From Oikopleura dioica (taxonomy: Eukaryota; Animalia; Chordata), in assembly GCA_907165135.1 (NCBI GenBank), contig OU015568.1, forward strand, positions 2,728,001 through 2,792,000: a stretch of DNA of 64,000 bases. The letters run 5' to 3'. This document shows, in pieces, positions 1-8,059 of this stretch. The notes beneath the pieces are model-generated. The model was not told where the DNA came from. It did no database searches and was given only the letters and a program-made list of their open reading frames with translations. The translations under genes were made by a program, and so were the position numbers. How positions within the stretch are numbered: the first letter of the stretch is position 1; each line of letters opens with the position of its first letter.

Positions 1-1447
1 AAAATTCCACGCTGGATTGTCGTCGTAAAAAACATTTTGAAGAACAGTCATATCGGTCTGACTGTAATCTAACGACTTCTCCCCATCTTTCGGATCGAAC
101 TGGACGCCATTTTTGAACATCCATTTTGTGACTTCAAGAGAAAGTTTACTCATCGGCATTCCCGGTGTTGACAGATCGATGGAGCAAACTTGAACATCAA
201 AAGGGTAAAGGGCGGGGTCCATCGAGCAAGAAGTGCTGAGTCGAAGCTTTCGAGACATTTTTACTTCTCCGCGGTAGTTAACTATGCAGCCGTATTCTTG
301 GATCTAAACAATTTCTTCACTAGGTGCCTTTTTGAAATCGAACTTACCTTAGCAAAGTTACCCCAGGTGTCCAGGTTGACAATCTCAATTGGGGGAGTCC
401 AGATTAGATTTGGGTCGACTTCGATCTTTTGTGTGTCATTGTAATACATTCGATCCCATTTCAGCCTATCGTCTTAAAAAAGATGTTGGTAAAGATAGTG
501 TATCTTCAATAAGGACCAAAGTTGGGTTTAGAGTAAACAGATACCTGTCCATGAAGAAAATACGACAATGGTCGTATCCATGGCGCTATCTGCAAGTTCC
601 AACGCATTCAAGCTCACCAGTTCTACTTCGACATTAACTTTCATCGCGTCGGAAGTCATAACAGTTAGAACATCGTCAAGGAGATCAAGATCCTCAGCAT
701 AAGCGAGACGTTGCTCCGGATTTTCTCCGGTTCTTGGGGACTTGGTCGACGTTGCCGACGAAGTTGACGATTGAGTTGTTGAACCATAATCTTCATATTC
801 AACGGGTCCGTTCTTTGGATCGCAGGCGCCATTATACTCAACATTTTGACTTCCATAGTCAAAACCAGGGCTAGCGAATTGGTGCCACACTATCCGCAAT
901 TACTTGGCTTAAGACTCCACTTATTAATTTTGATCTATTTTGATCAAATAAAGCGGTTGGAGACAAACCGCACCAACTCGCTCAAACTACTTTTTGGGGG
1001 CCCAACCATTGTTTTTTTGTAAGTACGGCCAGCGGGGCACCATTTTGCCAGCCCTGGGCAGGACCGTAGAAGATGTTCATAAGCCAGCCAACACAGTCGT
1101 TCTCTCCATTTTTCTTCCAGGTCCAGCCTTCCGACGCTTCCCATTCGCAGTTGAATGCATAATTTGCAATTCGCGATTCTTCGTAATCTGATGACCAAGT
1201 TTGTTTCATCTTCTTAAACCATTTTTTACAAATTGCTGGAGCATCAAATTTTTCATGGGATGGATCTAACCATGTGAACCTGAAATAATACTCATTATAA
1301 TTTTCCTGCGTCCAGTTGTACGTACTCTGGGTTGAGAGGGCTGACACTCTTCATGTATCCCGCATCGTACAAAAGTTTTTTGGCCAAAACCTCCTCAACG
1401 GATTTCGCATTTGCGGAGATGAGAAAATACAAAAGAAGTTCTCTCAT
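1..1447 (-). CDS. Cys-loop (pentameric) ligand-gated ion channel subunit, 5' part; runs off the left edge; long N-terminal extension
   Basis: Hand-spliced minus-strand exons give ...KVNVEVELVSLNALELADSAMDTTIVVFSSWT/DDRLKWD...IWTPPIEIVN and the Cys-loop CSMDPALYPFDVQVC (C-x13-C). Signal-peptide-like MRELLLYFLISANA at 1447. Whether exons at 982-1447 belong to this gene is not proven. Confidence 0.85.
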
Positions 1448-1723
1448 AATTTTGTTTCTCTGTTCTGCAAAGCTGCTGATACCTCGGTGGCTTTGCCCGC
1501 TGAAGACATAAAATTTTACTGACAATTTTTACGAGTAGGTCTCCAAGAAGTCGAGTTACGGCAAAAGTTTTATGTGATTACATTTCAAAAACAAATTAAA
1601 CCTTCGTTCGCCGACAACATAAAACTGCTCCCAATAAAAAATTTCTGCTTCGGATTGCATTTTTTTTTATAACTATATTATTTTAGTCTATAATTGTACA
1701 TATAAATATCACAGAGGCAAACG

Positions 1724-3477
1724 TCAGCTCTCGTTTCCGAGTTGAGCTATTTTGTAGTTGAGCTGACTGTATCCAAGTCGACCTTCTGTCGTCCAAAAGT
1801 ATATCCTCTTCCTAAAACTAATTTAATTTTCTGGTGAATAATGAAAACTTACGTTCTCGTATCGAAATAAGCTTGTGAGATCGAGAAATTCCCGAAGATT
1901 TCTGAAACTTGATCGACTTTGAAAGTGTGGCTGTTGAAAGCATACTTGACAACGACAGAGTTGTCTCTTGCAAACGACCTGAAGCCGTAGTAGACACCAC
2001 AAGCGATGAAACTCTGCATGAGCCAGTTTCTATGAAGCGTCGAGTGGTATGTTCGGCGGTTTTCCAAGGAGAAGAGGTCGAGACGGGTGAGGACAATATT
2101 CCCATGTGATTCTAAAAAGACTTGTGATGAAGGAGAATAATGGTAAAAGAATGGCCAGTACGGGGATCGAACCTGCGACATTCGCGTTATTAGCACGACG
2201 CTCTAACCAACTGAGCTAACCGGCCTGACCTCGCCTGTTTTCTAGAGGATATCTGTCAGGGACCATTACATCTGTTTATAATATTCTAATAGAAATTAAT
2301 CAGCTTCCTCTGATATGAAAGACATAAGCTTATCAGTATATTTCTTCTTCAAGCGAGCTTTTATATCAAATCTTAGCTGGAGTACCTGTATTGCAGTAAG
2401 TGACCCAGAGGCCAGTCTCGTCCACCGCCAGCTCTACTCCTCCAAGCTCACTGTCTTCATAAGTACACTCTTCTATCGTCGCATGATCCAGCTCCTTTTG
2501 CTTCCTCATTCTTCTAGCAGCGAACTCATATCTGATGATTCCCAGGGGCTTCTCTCTCACATAATACAAAACTCCGTTGTAGACAACGTGACCAGTTCCG
2601 TACCAAGGGTGAGGAAGGTTAAATGTTTCTGCGATTTTGTCAGCGATGAGATCTTCTGTTGAGTTGAATTTCAGGACAGACTTGGACTTTCCTTGTTGCT
2701 GAAAGACATAGATTTCGGAGCCATTCGAGGCGGAATCGGTCAGCCAGGCGCCTTCAGGGACAAGGGAGAAGTTGGCAACGAAGACGGGCTGTTCGAATTC
2801 TAGAGAACAAAGAATGACTTTCTGAAAAAGTAACTGATTCTTACTTGCAATGCCCAAGTTGCAGTCTTCCGGTCTATCAGGATCCATTGTCGTTCCATAC
2901 GGTCGATTATCAATCACTTTCATTCCTGCATCTTTCTCCGCCGAAGCATGAATCAGCCTTCTTTTGACATCATTATCACCGAGGTAGACGATCGTTGCCC
3001 TTGGATAAGCTTTTTGAAAACCCCCGACTCGGTCGACAGCTTCAACGTCCTTCGGCCCAAGTTCGATTTTGAGAAGACTTGATGAGAGATTTCGGAAATT
3101 TTCTTCGAGAATAGTGTCTGTTTCGTTTACTGCTTCTGGGATGCCAAAAACCTTTGAGAAAAATGATTTATTTCGACGGTTTCAGAGATGATTACCTTGA
3201 TTGTCCTTTCATGCGGAACAGATGCGTCCAAGCTCCTTATTTTCCTATTGACTAAAGTCAATTTGTCCGAAACATGGTCCATTCTTTTTGAAAGCTCCAA
3301 AACGCCGTGAACAAGTTTATTTTCCCTTTCAGCCACGTATGTGATGTTTTCAATTAGATCAGCCATTGTCTTTGAATATTTCATGTGCTCGAAACTTATA
3401 AACGTCCCAAGAGCCGCGATACAAATGCAGAAAAACCACCATTTCCGACGCTGGCAGAATTGAAAAAGCAAACTCAT
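1724..3477 (-). CDS. Type II membrane protein: signal-anchor, coiled coil, L1-ORF1p-like RRM, C-terminal olfactomedin domain
   Basis: Exons joined by GT-AG introns (3152-3195; a 45-nt in-frame intron near 2800-2845; ~2110-2394; ~1815-1853). Olfactomedin motifs GAWLTDS, GTGHVVYNGVLYY, VELAVDETGLWVTY, SFIACGVYY and YFDTRTKRIYFW. Stop TGA at 1724-1726. Confidence 0.85.
2152..2225 (-). tRNA. tRNA-Ile(AAU): tRNA-Ile, anticodon AAT
   Basis: Reverse complement GGCCGGTTAGCTCAGTTGGTTAGAGCGTCGTGCTAATAACGCGAATGTCGCAGGTTCGATCCCCGTACTGGCCA: cloverleaf, A box, B box GGTTCGATCC, anticodon loop CT-AAT-AA. Confidence 0.97.
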
Positions 3478-4050
3478 CGTTGAATAACTAATTTAAAAAA
3501 TAAGACTTTTCGATCTTTCGTTTCGTCTCTTCTCTTTTTCATATTCTCATTTTAAGCCGTTTTATCGATTTTGACAGAAAAAAAATGTTTTTGCTCTTAT
3601 TCGAATTGATGCGCCCGTCGGCGATGTCAGAATTCGAAAAAAGGGTTGACCGCTGAATTAAAACACAAGGACGATTCTGTCCTTGGCGCGTATCAAATAA
3701 ATGGTTTGTTTTGATAAATAAAGAATAAAGCGACATGTTCTTCTCCGAGAAGATACCGCTCTTTCAATAAACCCGATGTTGGAATTAAATAATTAAGTGA
3801 GTTCAAGACAATTCAACTCAATAACCAGATTCGAACGGTGAAATGAATGAATAAAAAAAATCAACAGTTCTCGATAAGACTTCTTCTTCTTTGAGTAACA
3901 AAGTGTATTTGTTTATGCAAAAGATATGAGCTGATAAACATTTCCGGTTGTGACAATATCTGACAACAGTGATGATCTTTATTGAAGTTTCAATTCTGAA
4001 ATTCAATAGTGACAATTTTTCTTTGTACTGATTCAAGAAAAAAGAATAAA

Positions 4051-5083
4051 ATGTCGCGGAAAAGAGATAAATGCATTTTTATTTTTGGAATAGTCGCTGC
4101 TTTTTTGTCGCTTTCATTGCTGTTTTCGGCTCCCATGTTTCTGACAAAACAGGATTTTGTTCAAGGACATGATGACAGCAACGTAGACGGTGAAATAAAT
4201 AAATATAAACGTGCTTTCTAATTTTTAGTAACAACTGATGCTACAACGTATAGGACGGAAGAAGCCACTTATATTTTTGACCAAGACAATGATTCATCAA
4301 CTGTTTCTGGCAGTACTTCTTCCGTTGAAAAAGAAACGACCGATTTTCAAACAACTGATAAGGCGGAAGAAATCACTGATAATTCTGAGCAGGTCAATGA
4401 ATCATCAACTGTTCCTGACGGTACTCCTTCCGTTGAAAAAGGAACCACCGATAGCATAACAACTGATATGACGGAAGTAGTCACTGATACTTTTGAGCAA
4501 TTCAGTACACCATCTACTCTGAAAGCCGAATCCACAGAGCCTTCACAAATCGTTCACAAAACGACTGACGCCGAAAAGACAACAACTATTTTCGAGACTG
4601 AATATTCTTCAACTCAAAAGATTCTGTCAACAGTCCCAAAATATTGCGATGGCATCACATGTCTCAATGGCGGAACTTGCAATGAAATGGAAGAAAACTT
4701 TTCTTGCGACTGCATTGACCCTTTTACTGGAGAATATTGTCAAGATCATCCGTGCGATGGATTTTGTCAAAATCATGGAGTTTGCGCTCTTGAATCTGAA
4801 ATCCCGACATGCTCTTGCCGGGACCCATATAAAAGGCTCTAAATTTAAAATTTTTCTTACGTTAGTTATGACAAGTTTTAGAGAGCCCTGATTATAAGTT
4901 GGGGAAAAATGCGAAGATGATGTTTGTAATGGAATCATTTGTGAAAATGGCGGAATCTGTGTTGCCCAAAAGGGACATGCAGCCATTATGCTGCATAATG
5001 GTTATTTTATGAATGATCTGACTTCAAATACTCACAGAAAGTTCACCTGTCAAAAATCACAAAATTGCTTATTCTTTCAATAA
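4051..5083 (+). CDS. Short paralogue of the EGF/C-type-lectin membrane protein (signal-anchor, Thr-rich stalk, 2-3 EGF repeats, lectin domain deleted)
   Basis: MSRKRDKCIFIFGIV... N-terminus, CDGITCLNGGTC EGF repeats. Last exon ends in frame with RKFTCQKSQNC, homologous to the C-terminus of the 5405-7640 gene. Confidence 0.75.
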
Positions 5084-5164
5084 ACAGCAACAAGAAAAAT
5101 CAAATTATTAGTTGCAAGTTTGAATGCTGAGATAATTATTATCTTTATTTTGCGAAAGGAATTT

Positions 5165-5245
5165 TCCTTGTGGCCTGACGATCGGCTTTAAAGCATCCGA
5201 ATTCGATTGAGCCTGAGCATAGCCAGTTGTCGGATCATTTTCTTC
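5165..5245 (-). pseudogene. Duplicated fragment of the penultimate FREM exon
   Basis: About 85% identical to 8155-8235; encodes [21 protein letters not shown] versus [21 protein letters not shown] in FREM. Confidence 0.8.
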
Positions 5246-5404
5246 ATTCAATTTTTTTTTTCAAACTGTATTTGTCTATGCAAAAAGATAACGTTTGATG
5301 CTCCGTTCCGATTATGACAGTATCTGACAATTTTGACGTTCACATTCGAAGATGATACCCTTTTTCTAGACAAATTCGACTCTGACTGTAGCAAGAGAAA
5401 GAGA

Positions 5405-7640
5405 ATGACACGAAAAAGAGATAAATGCATCTTTATTTTTGGAATAATTATGGCTTTTTTGGGGCTCTTGGTGCTTTTCATGGCTCCTCTGTTTCTGACG
5501 AAAAAAGATCTTTTACGCGTTGAAACCCCTTCTTATGACGGTGTGAAAAATTATTTAGAAAAAAGCAATAAATATTGTTTTAGTGACAACTGATGCTTTC
5601 AAAACGCATGATACAGAATTGGTCACTGATATTTTTAAAGAGGACGATGCATCATCTACCCTGAAAGCTGAGTACACAGAGGCCACAGAGATTGTTCTCA
5701 CAACTGTTTTGCCTTGCGCTTATGTTTCTTGTCAAAATGGTGGTAATTGTGTTGTTGAAGCAGCATCTTTTCTGTGCAAGTGCCCGGAGCCTTTTCACGG
5801 AAGCCTCTGCGAGCTCCATCCCTGCGATGGAGTAGATTGCGAGAACAAAGGAATCTGCATCAGTGAATCTGGTAATGCCACATGCTCTTGTCGGGACCCA
5901 TATAGAGGGCTCTTGGATTTCATTTTATGCAATTCTTTAATATATATTAAAAGAGCCCAAAAAATAAATAGGCGATAGATGCCAAACTCATGCTTGCGAG
6001 GCTTTTAATTGCGAGAATGGCGGAACTTGTGTTGTTCAAAAAGGAGCTGGTCGATGCATTTGCGAAGAACCTTTTTCTGGTCAATCCTGCCAAGACCATC
6101 CTTGCGATAACATAACCTGTGAAAATCACGGTGTTTGCGTTATTCAAGCTGGAATTCCAAAATGCTCTTGCCGGGACCCATATAAAGGGCTCTCAAATCA
6201 TATTTTATATAAAGATTTTCGATGAAATGAGAGAGCCCTGGTGATAAACTGGCGACAACTGCGAAACTCATGGTTGTGATGGAATAACCTGCGAAAATGA
6301 CGGAACCTGTGTTGTTCAGAAAAGCAACAGTAAATGCATTTGCAAAGAAAATTTTACTGGTACTCTTTGCGAAGATCACCCTTGCGATGACATTACATGT
6401 GAAAATGGTGGAACTTGTGTTGTGGAAGAGGGAGCAGTAAAATGCAGCTGCGAAGAGACATTTTTTGGTGATTTTTGTGAAAAACATCCATGCGATGGTT
6501 TCGATTGCCAAAATAACGGAACTTGTGTTACCGAATCTGGAGATGCTAAATGCTTTTGTCCTGATCCATACCTAGGGCTCTCTTCATTTCTTTGCATCAT
6601 TGATGCAGCATCAATGACTTTATTATATCGTTTAGAGCCTTTATATGGCGCAATTTATGATTTTTCTTAGCAAAGCCAAGTGAACCCTGATATCAGACAG
6701 GAGATAAGTGTCAAACTCATCCTTGCGATGTAATTTATTGTCAGAACAACGGAAAATGCGAGGTTCAAAATGACGCCGGTTTATGTCTTTGTGAAAAGCC
6801 GTTTTTGGAAATGTCTGCGAACATCATCCTTGCGATGGTATCAACTGTCAAAATGGTGGAACTTGCGATGATCAAAATGAGGTCGGTAAATGCAATTGCC
6901 CAGAGCCATTTTTGGGTGATCTCTGCGATAAACATCCATGTGATGATCTTGAATGCGGTGATCATGGAGACTGTAATGTTGAATCTGGAAATGCTCAATG
7001 TTCTTGTCATGAACCATATGAAGGGCTCTTATCATTTATTTTTGAAAGGCCGTTATTACTAATAACTTATTAGACATGAAACACTACATAAATATTGTCT
7101 CTTATCCTTGCTCGATATGCATATTACTTTGAGCCCTTATATAAGACAGGAGATAAATGCCAAACTCATCCTTGCGATTTAATAACCTGTCAAAATGGTG
7201 GAAACTGTATCGTTGTAAATGGAAACGGTCAATGCAGTTGCTCTGGTTCATTCAGTGGTATATTCTGTCAATGTCCGCCGAATTTTGTACGACCAGCGGA
7301 AAGTTTGAACTGGCAATCGGCAAAAACTTACTGCACTCAAATTGGAGGTTTTTTGGCATTCTTTCGGGACGAGAACGAGTTCAGCATTTTTAAAAACGCT
7401 CGACACGATAATAATGAAGAGTGGATCGGATACCACCAAAAGTACCCCAATAATAATGATATCTACGAAACAGTTGACGGAGAAGAGGCAATTTTCTTCA
7501 ATTGGGATAAGAGTAGCGGTGAACCAAGTAGTGCTGATGAACAATGCGTGAAAATCAAGCCAGCCGAGCAGTTTGTTATGCATGATTCGGGTTGCAACGC
7601 TCTCAGAAAATTTACCTGTATGAAATCGCAAAATTGCTGA
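5405..7640 (+). CDS. Type II membrane protein with ~11 EGF repeats and a C-terminal C-type lectin domain
   Basis: MTRKRDKCIFIFGII... N-terminus; repeated C-x4-C-xNxGxC-x8-CxC-x5-G-x2-C units across exons; lectin motifs LNWQSAKTYC, WIGY, FNWDKSSGEPS, CVKI. Confidence 0.85.
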
Positions 7641-8059
7641 AACTTTTGATATGGAAGAGTTTTTTTTGTGAAAAATGATTTTGCAACACTAATTCAAAAT
7701 AAACACTTATTTCTTTTTTGCCAACAATTTGTTCAGAATTGAAATAATGAAAATACATCTTGAGATATAAAAATGAAAATTCCGAAAATATTTCATATTT
7801 TATTTACAATATTTGAACTTGCATAAGTCGGGAACTAGATACTTTCTTTTGTACAATAATAATGCTGTTTTGACAAATTTTCAAAAAGTAACGTCTTGTG
7901 TGTTTCAGGTTTCTGGGTTGTTCGGGTTCGAATTTGATAGAAAATGAGTTTCAGTAACGATAACTTTTATGATAAGAGGTTTTGAGGTAAAGTACTGAGG
8001 CTTGAGAGGGGTTCTGGTCTTTTTCCCTGGCGAGGAAGACAGGTCGTGTTTTAGAAATT

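Follow-up and report, generated by a model that had tools for sequence, protein, structure and literature searches.

How does a protein with an olfactomedin propeller come to carry, ahead of that propeller, a module that looks like part of a retrotransposon protein? The question is raised by a gene of Oikopleura dioica on the minus strand at positions 3477 to 1724 of a 64,000-nucleotide (nt) stretch of genomic DNA (assembly GCA_907165135.1, contig OU015568.1, positions 2,728,001 to 2,792,000; hereafter the window, whose numbering we use unless another locus is named). Its product combines an N-terminal apolar segment, a coiled coil, an RNA recognition motif (RRM) resembling that of ORF1p from the long interspersed nuclear element LINE-1 (L1), and an olfactomedin (OLF) domain. 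We consider it quite probable that this is a conserved, expressed host gene, belonging to an appendicularian family, at least five genes strong, with the order anchor, coiled coil, RRM and OLF, in which an RRM derived from LINE ORF1p serves as an extracellular stalk module.

As read from the sequence, the gene consists of five exons, with the ATG at 3477 and a TGA stop at 1726-1724; all of its parts given below lie on the minus strand. Exon 1 (3477..3196; 94 codons, phase 0, ending in ...HERTIK) encodes a basic N-terminus, an apolar segment and a heptad-rich helix. The apolar segment follows the short basic N-terminus and, to judge by hydrophobicity and charge flanks, spans 17 residues (13-29). 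Exon 2 (3151..2845) comprises 102 codons and one base, and encodes the RRM in approximately its first 80 residues, with a short linker after it that reaches as far as residue 97, the first of the conserved OLF cysteines. The two exons are separated by intron 1 (3195..3152), which is 44 nt long, runs from GT (3195-3194) to AG (3153-3152) and lies in phase 0. The first-pass annotation of this DNA had proposed that removal of a 44-nt GT-AG intron at 3152-3195 reveals an exon that had been missed. These coordinates are exact, and the translation of exon 2 equals the peptide quoted there. The interval given for the feature ended too early, at 2915, which falls inside exon 2; the true end is 2845. 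For what follows, the exons of the window gene were analyzed singly, and a natural full-length ortholog, P0023, was used as a stand-in for the whole protein.

The kinship of the RRM is not evident from a routine domain search. The sole Pfam match of exon 2 is to Transposase_22 (PF02994), at 12.9 bits and an expect value (E) of 0.14, with a gathering cut-off of 22.4. A single-sequence phmmer search of exon 2 against 1.8e9 representatives returned six short family fragments, all from marine metagenomes, and no LINE protein; a family profile was therefore needed. Profile A2 was built from exon 2, the six metagenome relatives and the paralogs in the genome itself, and includes no transposon sequences. 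Against 177,635 PDB sequences it matched 2w7a (E 1.3e-6), 2ykp and 2yko (both 2.6e-6) and 2ldy (4.2e-6), all of them LINE-1 ORF1p. The fifth match had an E of 0.038, leaving ORF1p entries alone below E 1e-5, and canonical RRMs scored far lower. A likeness to the RRM of L1 ORF1p that had at first been drawn by eye is borne out by these values and by the first rank of ORF1p in the structure searches described below.

The family profile was also run against 5.8e9 proteins, where it matched P0015 (E 2.3e-3; hhalign probability 96%, E 3e-9). P0015 is a genuine LINE ORF1; an open reading frame (ORF) with an RVT_1 domain begins 213 nt after it on a 219-kb contig. When P0015 was searched back on the O. 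dioica genome, its best matches were three loci of the family described here, with nothing else credible. The Transposase_22 model of Pfam fails to detect ORF1 of the P0015 type as well, and this lineage of ORF1p is therefore under-annotated. The LINE that encodes P0015 (L014:8001-10585) has hundreds of relatives (P0016-P0132), and such relatives are common in corals; where a relative bears a name, its source is a scleractinian coral or a sea anemone (Oculina, Montipora, Pocillopora, Actinostola) or, in a single case, a tick.

Individual residues point the same way. The RRM of human L1 ORF1p has a pair of salt bridges that are strongly conserved, E165-R215 and E169-R202, between the loops beta1-alpha1 and beta2-beta3 (PMC6428221). 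Their equivalents in window exon 2, as columns of the HMMER and family alignments, are E6-R51 and E10-R41. All four residues are conserved throughout the family except in the paralog L021, where E10 and R41 have both changed; the replacements there, Glu to Arg and Arg to Trp, look like a coupled loss. The GIPE (GxPE) and PR motifs are likewise common to ORF1p and the family.

Structural comparison leads to the same protein. The AlphaFold model of exon 2, at a predicted local distance difference test (pLDDT) value of 63, has the order beta-alpha-beta-beta-alpha, and its top ten Foldseek matches in the PDB are all ORF1p chains. The model of ortholog P0005, in which anchor, helix and RRM are encoded in one exon, reaches a pLDDT of 78, with 85-94 within the RRM. 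It shows one helix at residues 3-90, beta1 at residue 93, and from there the order beta1-alpha1-beta2-beta3-alpha2-beta4. Compared with 48,161 representative chains by VIA-align, this model places 2w7a first (Z 11.3, root-mean-square deviation 2.4 Å, 88 residues), with residues 91-186 of the model on ORF1p 155-252. Second is 2yko (Z 10.6), aligned over 128 residues that include the coiled coil (model residues 49-192), and third is 2ldy (Z 10.1), whereas all other chains, canonical RRMs included, have a Z of 7.5 or below. Foldseek with the same model gave ORF1p in all of its top eleven matches (best E 3e-5). The first-pass annotation had staked the ORF1p kinship on a profile or structural match being found; the profile match is significant, and ORF1p ranks first among the structures.

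The coiled coil lies directly N-terminal to the RRM, as it does in ORF1p, and exon 1 of the window gene is colinear with the helix region of P0005. An ORF1p-like succession of heptad coiled coil and RRM had been suggested from the letters; the modelled helix of P0005, followed within three residues by beta1, and the 2yko alignment spanning both parts bear it out. Missing from all members is the C-terminal domain (CTD) of ORF1p: the models contain no further fold before the OLF domain, the stretch between beta4 and the first OLF cysteine is approximately 15 residues long, and the paralog product P0010 ends directly past beta4. We conclude that the RRM is homologous to the RRM of LINE-1-like ORF1p, and that the helix leading into it is probably homologous to the ORF1p coiled coil.

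The gene is not alone in its genome. Seven OLF loci are found in O. dioica, five of which (the window gene, L002, L007, L008 and L021) encode the full architecture of anchor, coiled coil, RRM and OLF. The other two, both without an RRM, are a latrophilin-like gene (L020) and a canonical one (L022) with the order CXC, coiled coil, mucin and OLF. A sixth RRM gene, L003 (G000:C2:1164328-1167501), encodes P0010, which has the anchor, the coiled coil and the RRM and then stops, and which is annotated at NCBI as 'unnamed protein product [Oikopleura dioica]'. The ORF1p-derived module is thereby predicted to exist as a stand-alone membrane protein too.

The intron near the RRM varies among the paralogs, lying before 'VFGIPE' in the window gene and inside 'KG/IPE' in L007, and being absent from L002. 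At L008:1416-1515 (C2, ~4.366 Mb), the only splice that would leave the RRM colinear with that of L007 is a putative GA-AG intron (...GAAAAG/GATAGT...AAAAG/GTTTCC); an alternative GT donor further on would add 15 unrelated residues. Non-canonical introns starting with G have been reported in O. dioica. The fifth full paralog, L021:2467-2844 (minus strand; C5, ~9.628 Mb), was missed by the genome-wide profile search.

None of these loci looks like a transposon. A tblastn search with LINE ORF2 found no similarity to reverse transcriptase in the window or at the paralog loci, and the window gene, with its four spliceosomal introns, sits among cellular genes and is not the ORF1 of a retrotransposon. 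Over the whole genome, PF02994 gave one sub-threshold match at an unrelated place, so that at Pfam sensitivity no L1-type ORF1 is left in the assembly. This agrees with the published loss of LINEs, which are nearly absent from the Okinawa O. dioica assembly OKI2018_I69 (PMC8008620), and of non-LTR (long terminal repeat) families in this species (PMC4402516).

Evidence that the RRM exon is part of a working gene comes from orthologs. A Tara metagenome scaffold (L023), whose protein is 81% identical, carries at the codon boundary of intron 1 a GT-AG intron of 98 nt and unrelated sequence, and the exons on both sides are conserved between it and the window. Compared with L023, exon 2 shows 0.10 differences per non-synonymous site (pN) and 0.77 per synonymous site (pS), the latter saturated; the exon is under strong purifying selection. 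In the distant genomic orthologs P0005 and P0002, the coiled coil continues into the RRM in one ORF, without intron 1. Another genomic ortholog, P0004, continues from the RRM to the start of OLF in one ORF across the site of intron 2 (2844..2800 in the window; 45 nt, GT-AG, phase 1), with the remaining OLF just downstream, and L024 has the same order of coiled coil, RRM and OLF as the other genomic orthologs.

At the start of three ortholog mRNA contigs (L025, L026 and L027) stands the spliced leader of 40 nt, ACTCATCCC...CTAACAG, or else just the 3' part of it, and L026 ends in poly(A). Each of the three holds one ORF of 453-454 residues, encoding anchor, helix, RRM and complete OLF. The leader occurs at 51 places in the O. 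dioica genome and at none in a reversed control; 49 of these copies are exact and 2 have one mismatch (e.g. C1:7555039-7555078), and they often form inverted pairs 450-2000 nt apart. The first-pass annotation had made the architecture depend on the new exon being joined to the OLF exons in transcripts, and the ortholog transcripts join both in a single ORF. Its view that the module is a domesticated retrotransposon RRM gains from the purifying selection, the five paralogs, the lack of a reverse transcriptase nearby and these mRNAs.

Laid on P0023, the five window exons correspond to residues 1-94, 95-200, 206-338, 342-426 and 428-449, at 49-65% identity. Exons 1 and 2 abut there without a gap, which makes their join exact. 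The OLF domain (PF02191) begins with exon 3 (2799..2386), which encodes its N-terminal half (Pfam E 2.8e-30, profile positions 7-138), and continues in exon 4 (2111..1853) with the middle of the domain and the second conserved cysteine (E 5.1e-9, positions 143-214). After intron 4 (1852..1812; 41 nt), exon 5 (1811..1727, with the stop at 1726-1724) encodes the end of the domain, matching P0023 residues 428-449. The domain is complete: exons 3 and 4 together cover profile positions 7-214, and P0023 covers 7-242 at E 6.7e-56.

On which side of the membrane the module lies depends on the N-terminus. Every member has an apolar segment of 16-25 residues at this end, in most preceded by 3-4 basic residues, and the placement of the module between a signal anchor and the olfactomedin propeller, as first described, holds in its order. 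By its sequence, the segment fits a type II signal anchor. The short basic N-terminus would then be cytosolic and the rest lumenal or extracellular, because OLF domains are all extracellular and the putative disulfide cysteines are kept. These cysteines, residue 97 of exon 2 and residue 37 of exon 4, lie where they would be expected, are also present in all paralogs read, and may be the equivalent of the C245-C433 disulfide pair of myocilin. Their retention, one where OLF begins and one midway through it, fits the lumenal or extracellular side.

N-glycosylation sequons had also been put forward in favor of an extracellular stalk. All three are present: NIT at exon 1 residue 44, NET at exon 2 residue 9 and NLS at exon 2 residue 21. 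The Glu of NET is E10, which falls in the same alignment column as E169, a residue of the salt bridges in human ORF1p, and VNET is also found in the LINE ORF1 P0015. NET is therefore inherited and no sign of adaptation to the secretory pathway, so that this part of the claim falls away.

A protein that is secreted, with the N-terminal stretch as a cleaved signal peptide in place of a membrane anchor, seems to us a less likely outcome that still deserves to be taken seriously. Most proteins of the olfactomedin family are secreted. The apolar run of the window gene is itself short and borderline, at 17 residues and a best 19-mer Kyte-Doolittle value of 1.55, and a cleaved signal peptide is on that account possible. 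The paralogs, in contrast, have apolar runs of 19-25 residues that score 1.9-2.3 and carry basic N-flanks, as is typical of signal anchors. The side of the membrane would not depend on this: coiled coil, RRM and OLF would be lumenal or extracellular whether the segment is an anchor or a cleaved signal.

For the stalk that we favor, a course of events and a mode of action can be proposed. An ancestral appendicularian would most likely have acquired the RRM, probably together with the helix, from a LINE ORF1, and the family would have spread by gene duplication while LINEs were largely purged from the genome. The coiled coil may oligomerize the protein, possibly as a trimer by analogy with ORF1p (PMC3905857). 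Lying between the coiled coil and the propeller, at the base of the former, the compact RRM could act as a rigid adaptor that holds several OLF propellers in place at the cell surface or in the matrix, with the OLF domain as the part that would bind the ligand.

High-affinity RNA binding, from what the sequences encode, is probably not the function. In ORF1p, the CTD and the RRM together form the RNA-binding cleft, and both are needed for high-affinity binding (PMC6428221); as the CTD is missing and the module would lie outside the cytosol, RNA packaging is unlikely. The main rival to a purely structural stalk is a residual polyanion-binding role. Gene and origin would be the same, and the RRM would still bind nucleic acids or other polyanions, making the protein a receptor, at the surface or in the matrix, that captures extracellular RNA or DNA or acidic glycans beside the OLF propeller. 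The strong purifying selection on the RRM core could be read in this way, as could the invariant Lys in all members and the retention of the structural salt bridges (L021 being without one pair). The OLF-less paralog keeps anchor, coiled coil and RRM, and its existence would imply a selectable role for the module of its own. All members, however, lack the CTD of ORF1p, most have an RRM that by net charge is neutral to strongly acidic (-11 to +6), and we regard this role as unlikely. Charge was not retained as an indicator that RNA binding had been lost, since the LINE ORF1 P0015 is slightly acidic too (-3). The most specific form of the idea, a nucleic-acid- or polyanion-binding coiled coil and RRM of ORF1p displayed as a cell-surface trimer beside OLF propellers, is in our estimation rather improbable. 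If true, it would be the first ORF1p derivative with an extracellular role, and it might serve as a receptor either for extracellular RNA or for the matrix of acidic polysaccharides in the larvacean house.

The origin from a transposon could itself be questioned. A ferredoxin-like fold may have arisen by convergence, or an old host RRM may have given the LINE its domain, and there would then have been no capture. Identity of the module to human ORF1p is just ~18-25%, the threshold of the Pfam model is not reached, and no LINE with such an ORF1 remains in the genome as a donor. Against this, the profile match at E ~1e-6 is specific to ORF1p with canonical RRMs much lower, the module shares with ORF1p four salt-bridge residues as well as the GIPE and PR motifs, and the coiled coil is at the same position in both. 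LINEs with ORF1 and this RRM are known from corals, a tick and vertebrates (PMC3905857), and Oikopleura-type sequences were the only ones in which the family turned up, a range based on metagenome and metatranscriptome contigs that bear the Oikopleura spliced leader. A search with residues 1-200 of P0023 returned two metatranscriptome proteins only; within the range of lengths covered, no O. dioica protein annotated at full length had this architecture. Taken together, an origin without capture appears very unlikely. An artefact, in which the remnant of a decayed LINE ORF1 happens to neighbor an olfactomedin gene and the two are falsely read as one, could appeal to the transcript evidence coming from orthologs of the window locus, but is ruled out, with hardly any probability left to it, by four other genome loci with the same domain order, genomic orthologs that read through both junctions in single ORFs, spliced-leader and poly(A) mRNAs that encode the whole protein, purifying selection on exon 2 and the lack of a reverse transcriptase nearby.

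Several observations weigh against the reading of a captured ORF1p module that serves as an expressed, anchored stalk. PF02994 stays below its gathering score in every member tried (12.9-14.4 vs 22.4 bits), and several members give no match; strict membership of this Pfam family, which had been put forward as a check, fails. An ESM Atlas feature search with exon 2 ranked the bacterial DUF2103 first (0.90), with Transposase_22 clusters at ranks 9 and 26. A three-copy prediction of P0005:33-190 gave a score of 0.09, with the mark set at 0.32, which speaks neither for nor against a trimer, and the apolar run of the window gene is, as said, at the lower edge for an anchor. Expression of the exact window locus is deduced from the mRNAs of its orthologs, and the direction of transfer from transposon to host from taxonomic distribution.

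Among solved structures, LINE-1 ORF1p (2w7a, 2yko/2ykp/2ykq, 2ldy) is the best match to the module both by sequence and by structure, and the two have in common the RRM, with its two salt-bridge pairs and its GxPE and PR motifs, and the coiled coil ahead of it. In contrast to ORF1p, the family lacks the CTD, stays below the Transposase_22 threshold and is not the first ORF of a retrotransposon; its genes have introns, and its proteins an N-terminal signal anchor and a predicted extracellular OLF domain after the RRM. The module is like the first two-thirds of an ORF1p, without being one.

Several co-options of ORF1p have been described. In vertebrates these are L1TD1 (in mammals), Lyosin (MYL4), L1-RFX5, NUP42-L1 and USP4-L1, of which L1TD1 is the only gene described as derived wholly from ORF1p, the four fusion isoforms having been described in 2025 (PMC12129022). 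In fungi, the EKA effectors of powdery mildew are a further case (PMC4641428). As in these, a LINE ORF1 coding sequence has been kept in a host protein under purifying selection in Oikopleura, and as in Lyosin and the three other fusions, the ORF1 part is a coding exon of a host gene. The vertebrate proteins, however, are cytoplasmic or nuclear and carry their ORF1 sequence in an alternative first or last exon, whereas the Oikopleura module is constitutive and internal, with a signal anchor before it and an extracellular domain behind. It also differs in its tunicate host and in its expansion to 5-6 genes. None of the known co-options is found in a tunicate, lies behind a signal anchor or is fused to an extracellular domain. 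The capture in Oikopleura is independent of them, and its product is not the ortholog of any.

With the olfactomedin family (noelin/OLFM1, myocilin, OLFM4), the proteins share the complete propeller, the N-terminal targeting and the upstream coiled coil, and probably the cysteine pair. The type II layout of gliomedin and the colmedins is plausible for the Oikopleura protein too. Unlike in other olfactomedins, an RRM is inserted between coiled coil and OLF, and there is neither the collagen of gliomedin nor the CXC of noelin: exons 1 and 2 contain no G-X-Y collagen repeats, and coiled coil and RRM fill that place. In the literature searched we found no link between olfactomedin and ORF1p and no description of Oikopleura olfactomedins, which accords with the initial impression that this architecture had not been described.

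Other features of the locus may be recorded briefly. Intron 3 of the window gene (2385..2112; 274 nt) contains a tRNA-Ile(AAT) gene at 2152..2225, detected with ARAGORN on the same (minus) strand as its host, and is approximately six times as long as the other introns of the gene. Downstream, positions 1-1550 (minus strand) appear by eye to hold the next gene, encoding a protein like a subunit of Cys-loop ligand-gated ion channels (NLIWTPPIEIVNLDTWG). On the plus strand, positions 4000-7700 contain apparent tandem duplicates, each opening with a type II-like anchor (MSRKRDKCIFIFG / MTRKRDKCIFIFG); after the anchor follow Thr/Ser-rich stretches and EGF-like cysteine repeats, and the last of these genes ends in a C-type-lectin-like part.

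Co-option of ORF1p is rare, and the known animal cases are all intracellular; reuse in a protein that faces the outside is rare and, it appears, has not been described. A module behind a signal anchor and before an extracellular OLF domain could not perform its ancestral job on cytoplasmic L1 RNA, and the family offers a natural experiment on uses of the ORF1p scaffold beyond RNA packaging. The domain goes unnoticed in standard Pfam annotation, so other genes of this kind may have escaped attention. For O. dioica, the finding means that a genome purged of almost all LINEs can still retain part of one as a host protein, and for olfactomedin biology, by analogy, the module would be a new oligomerizing stalk, to be set beside the coiled coils found in noelin and myocilin and beside gliomedin's collagen.

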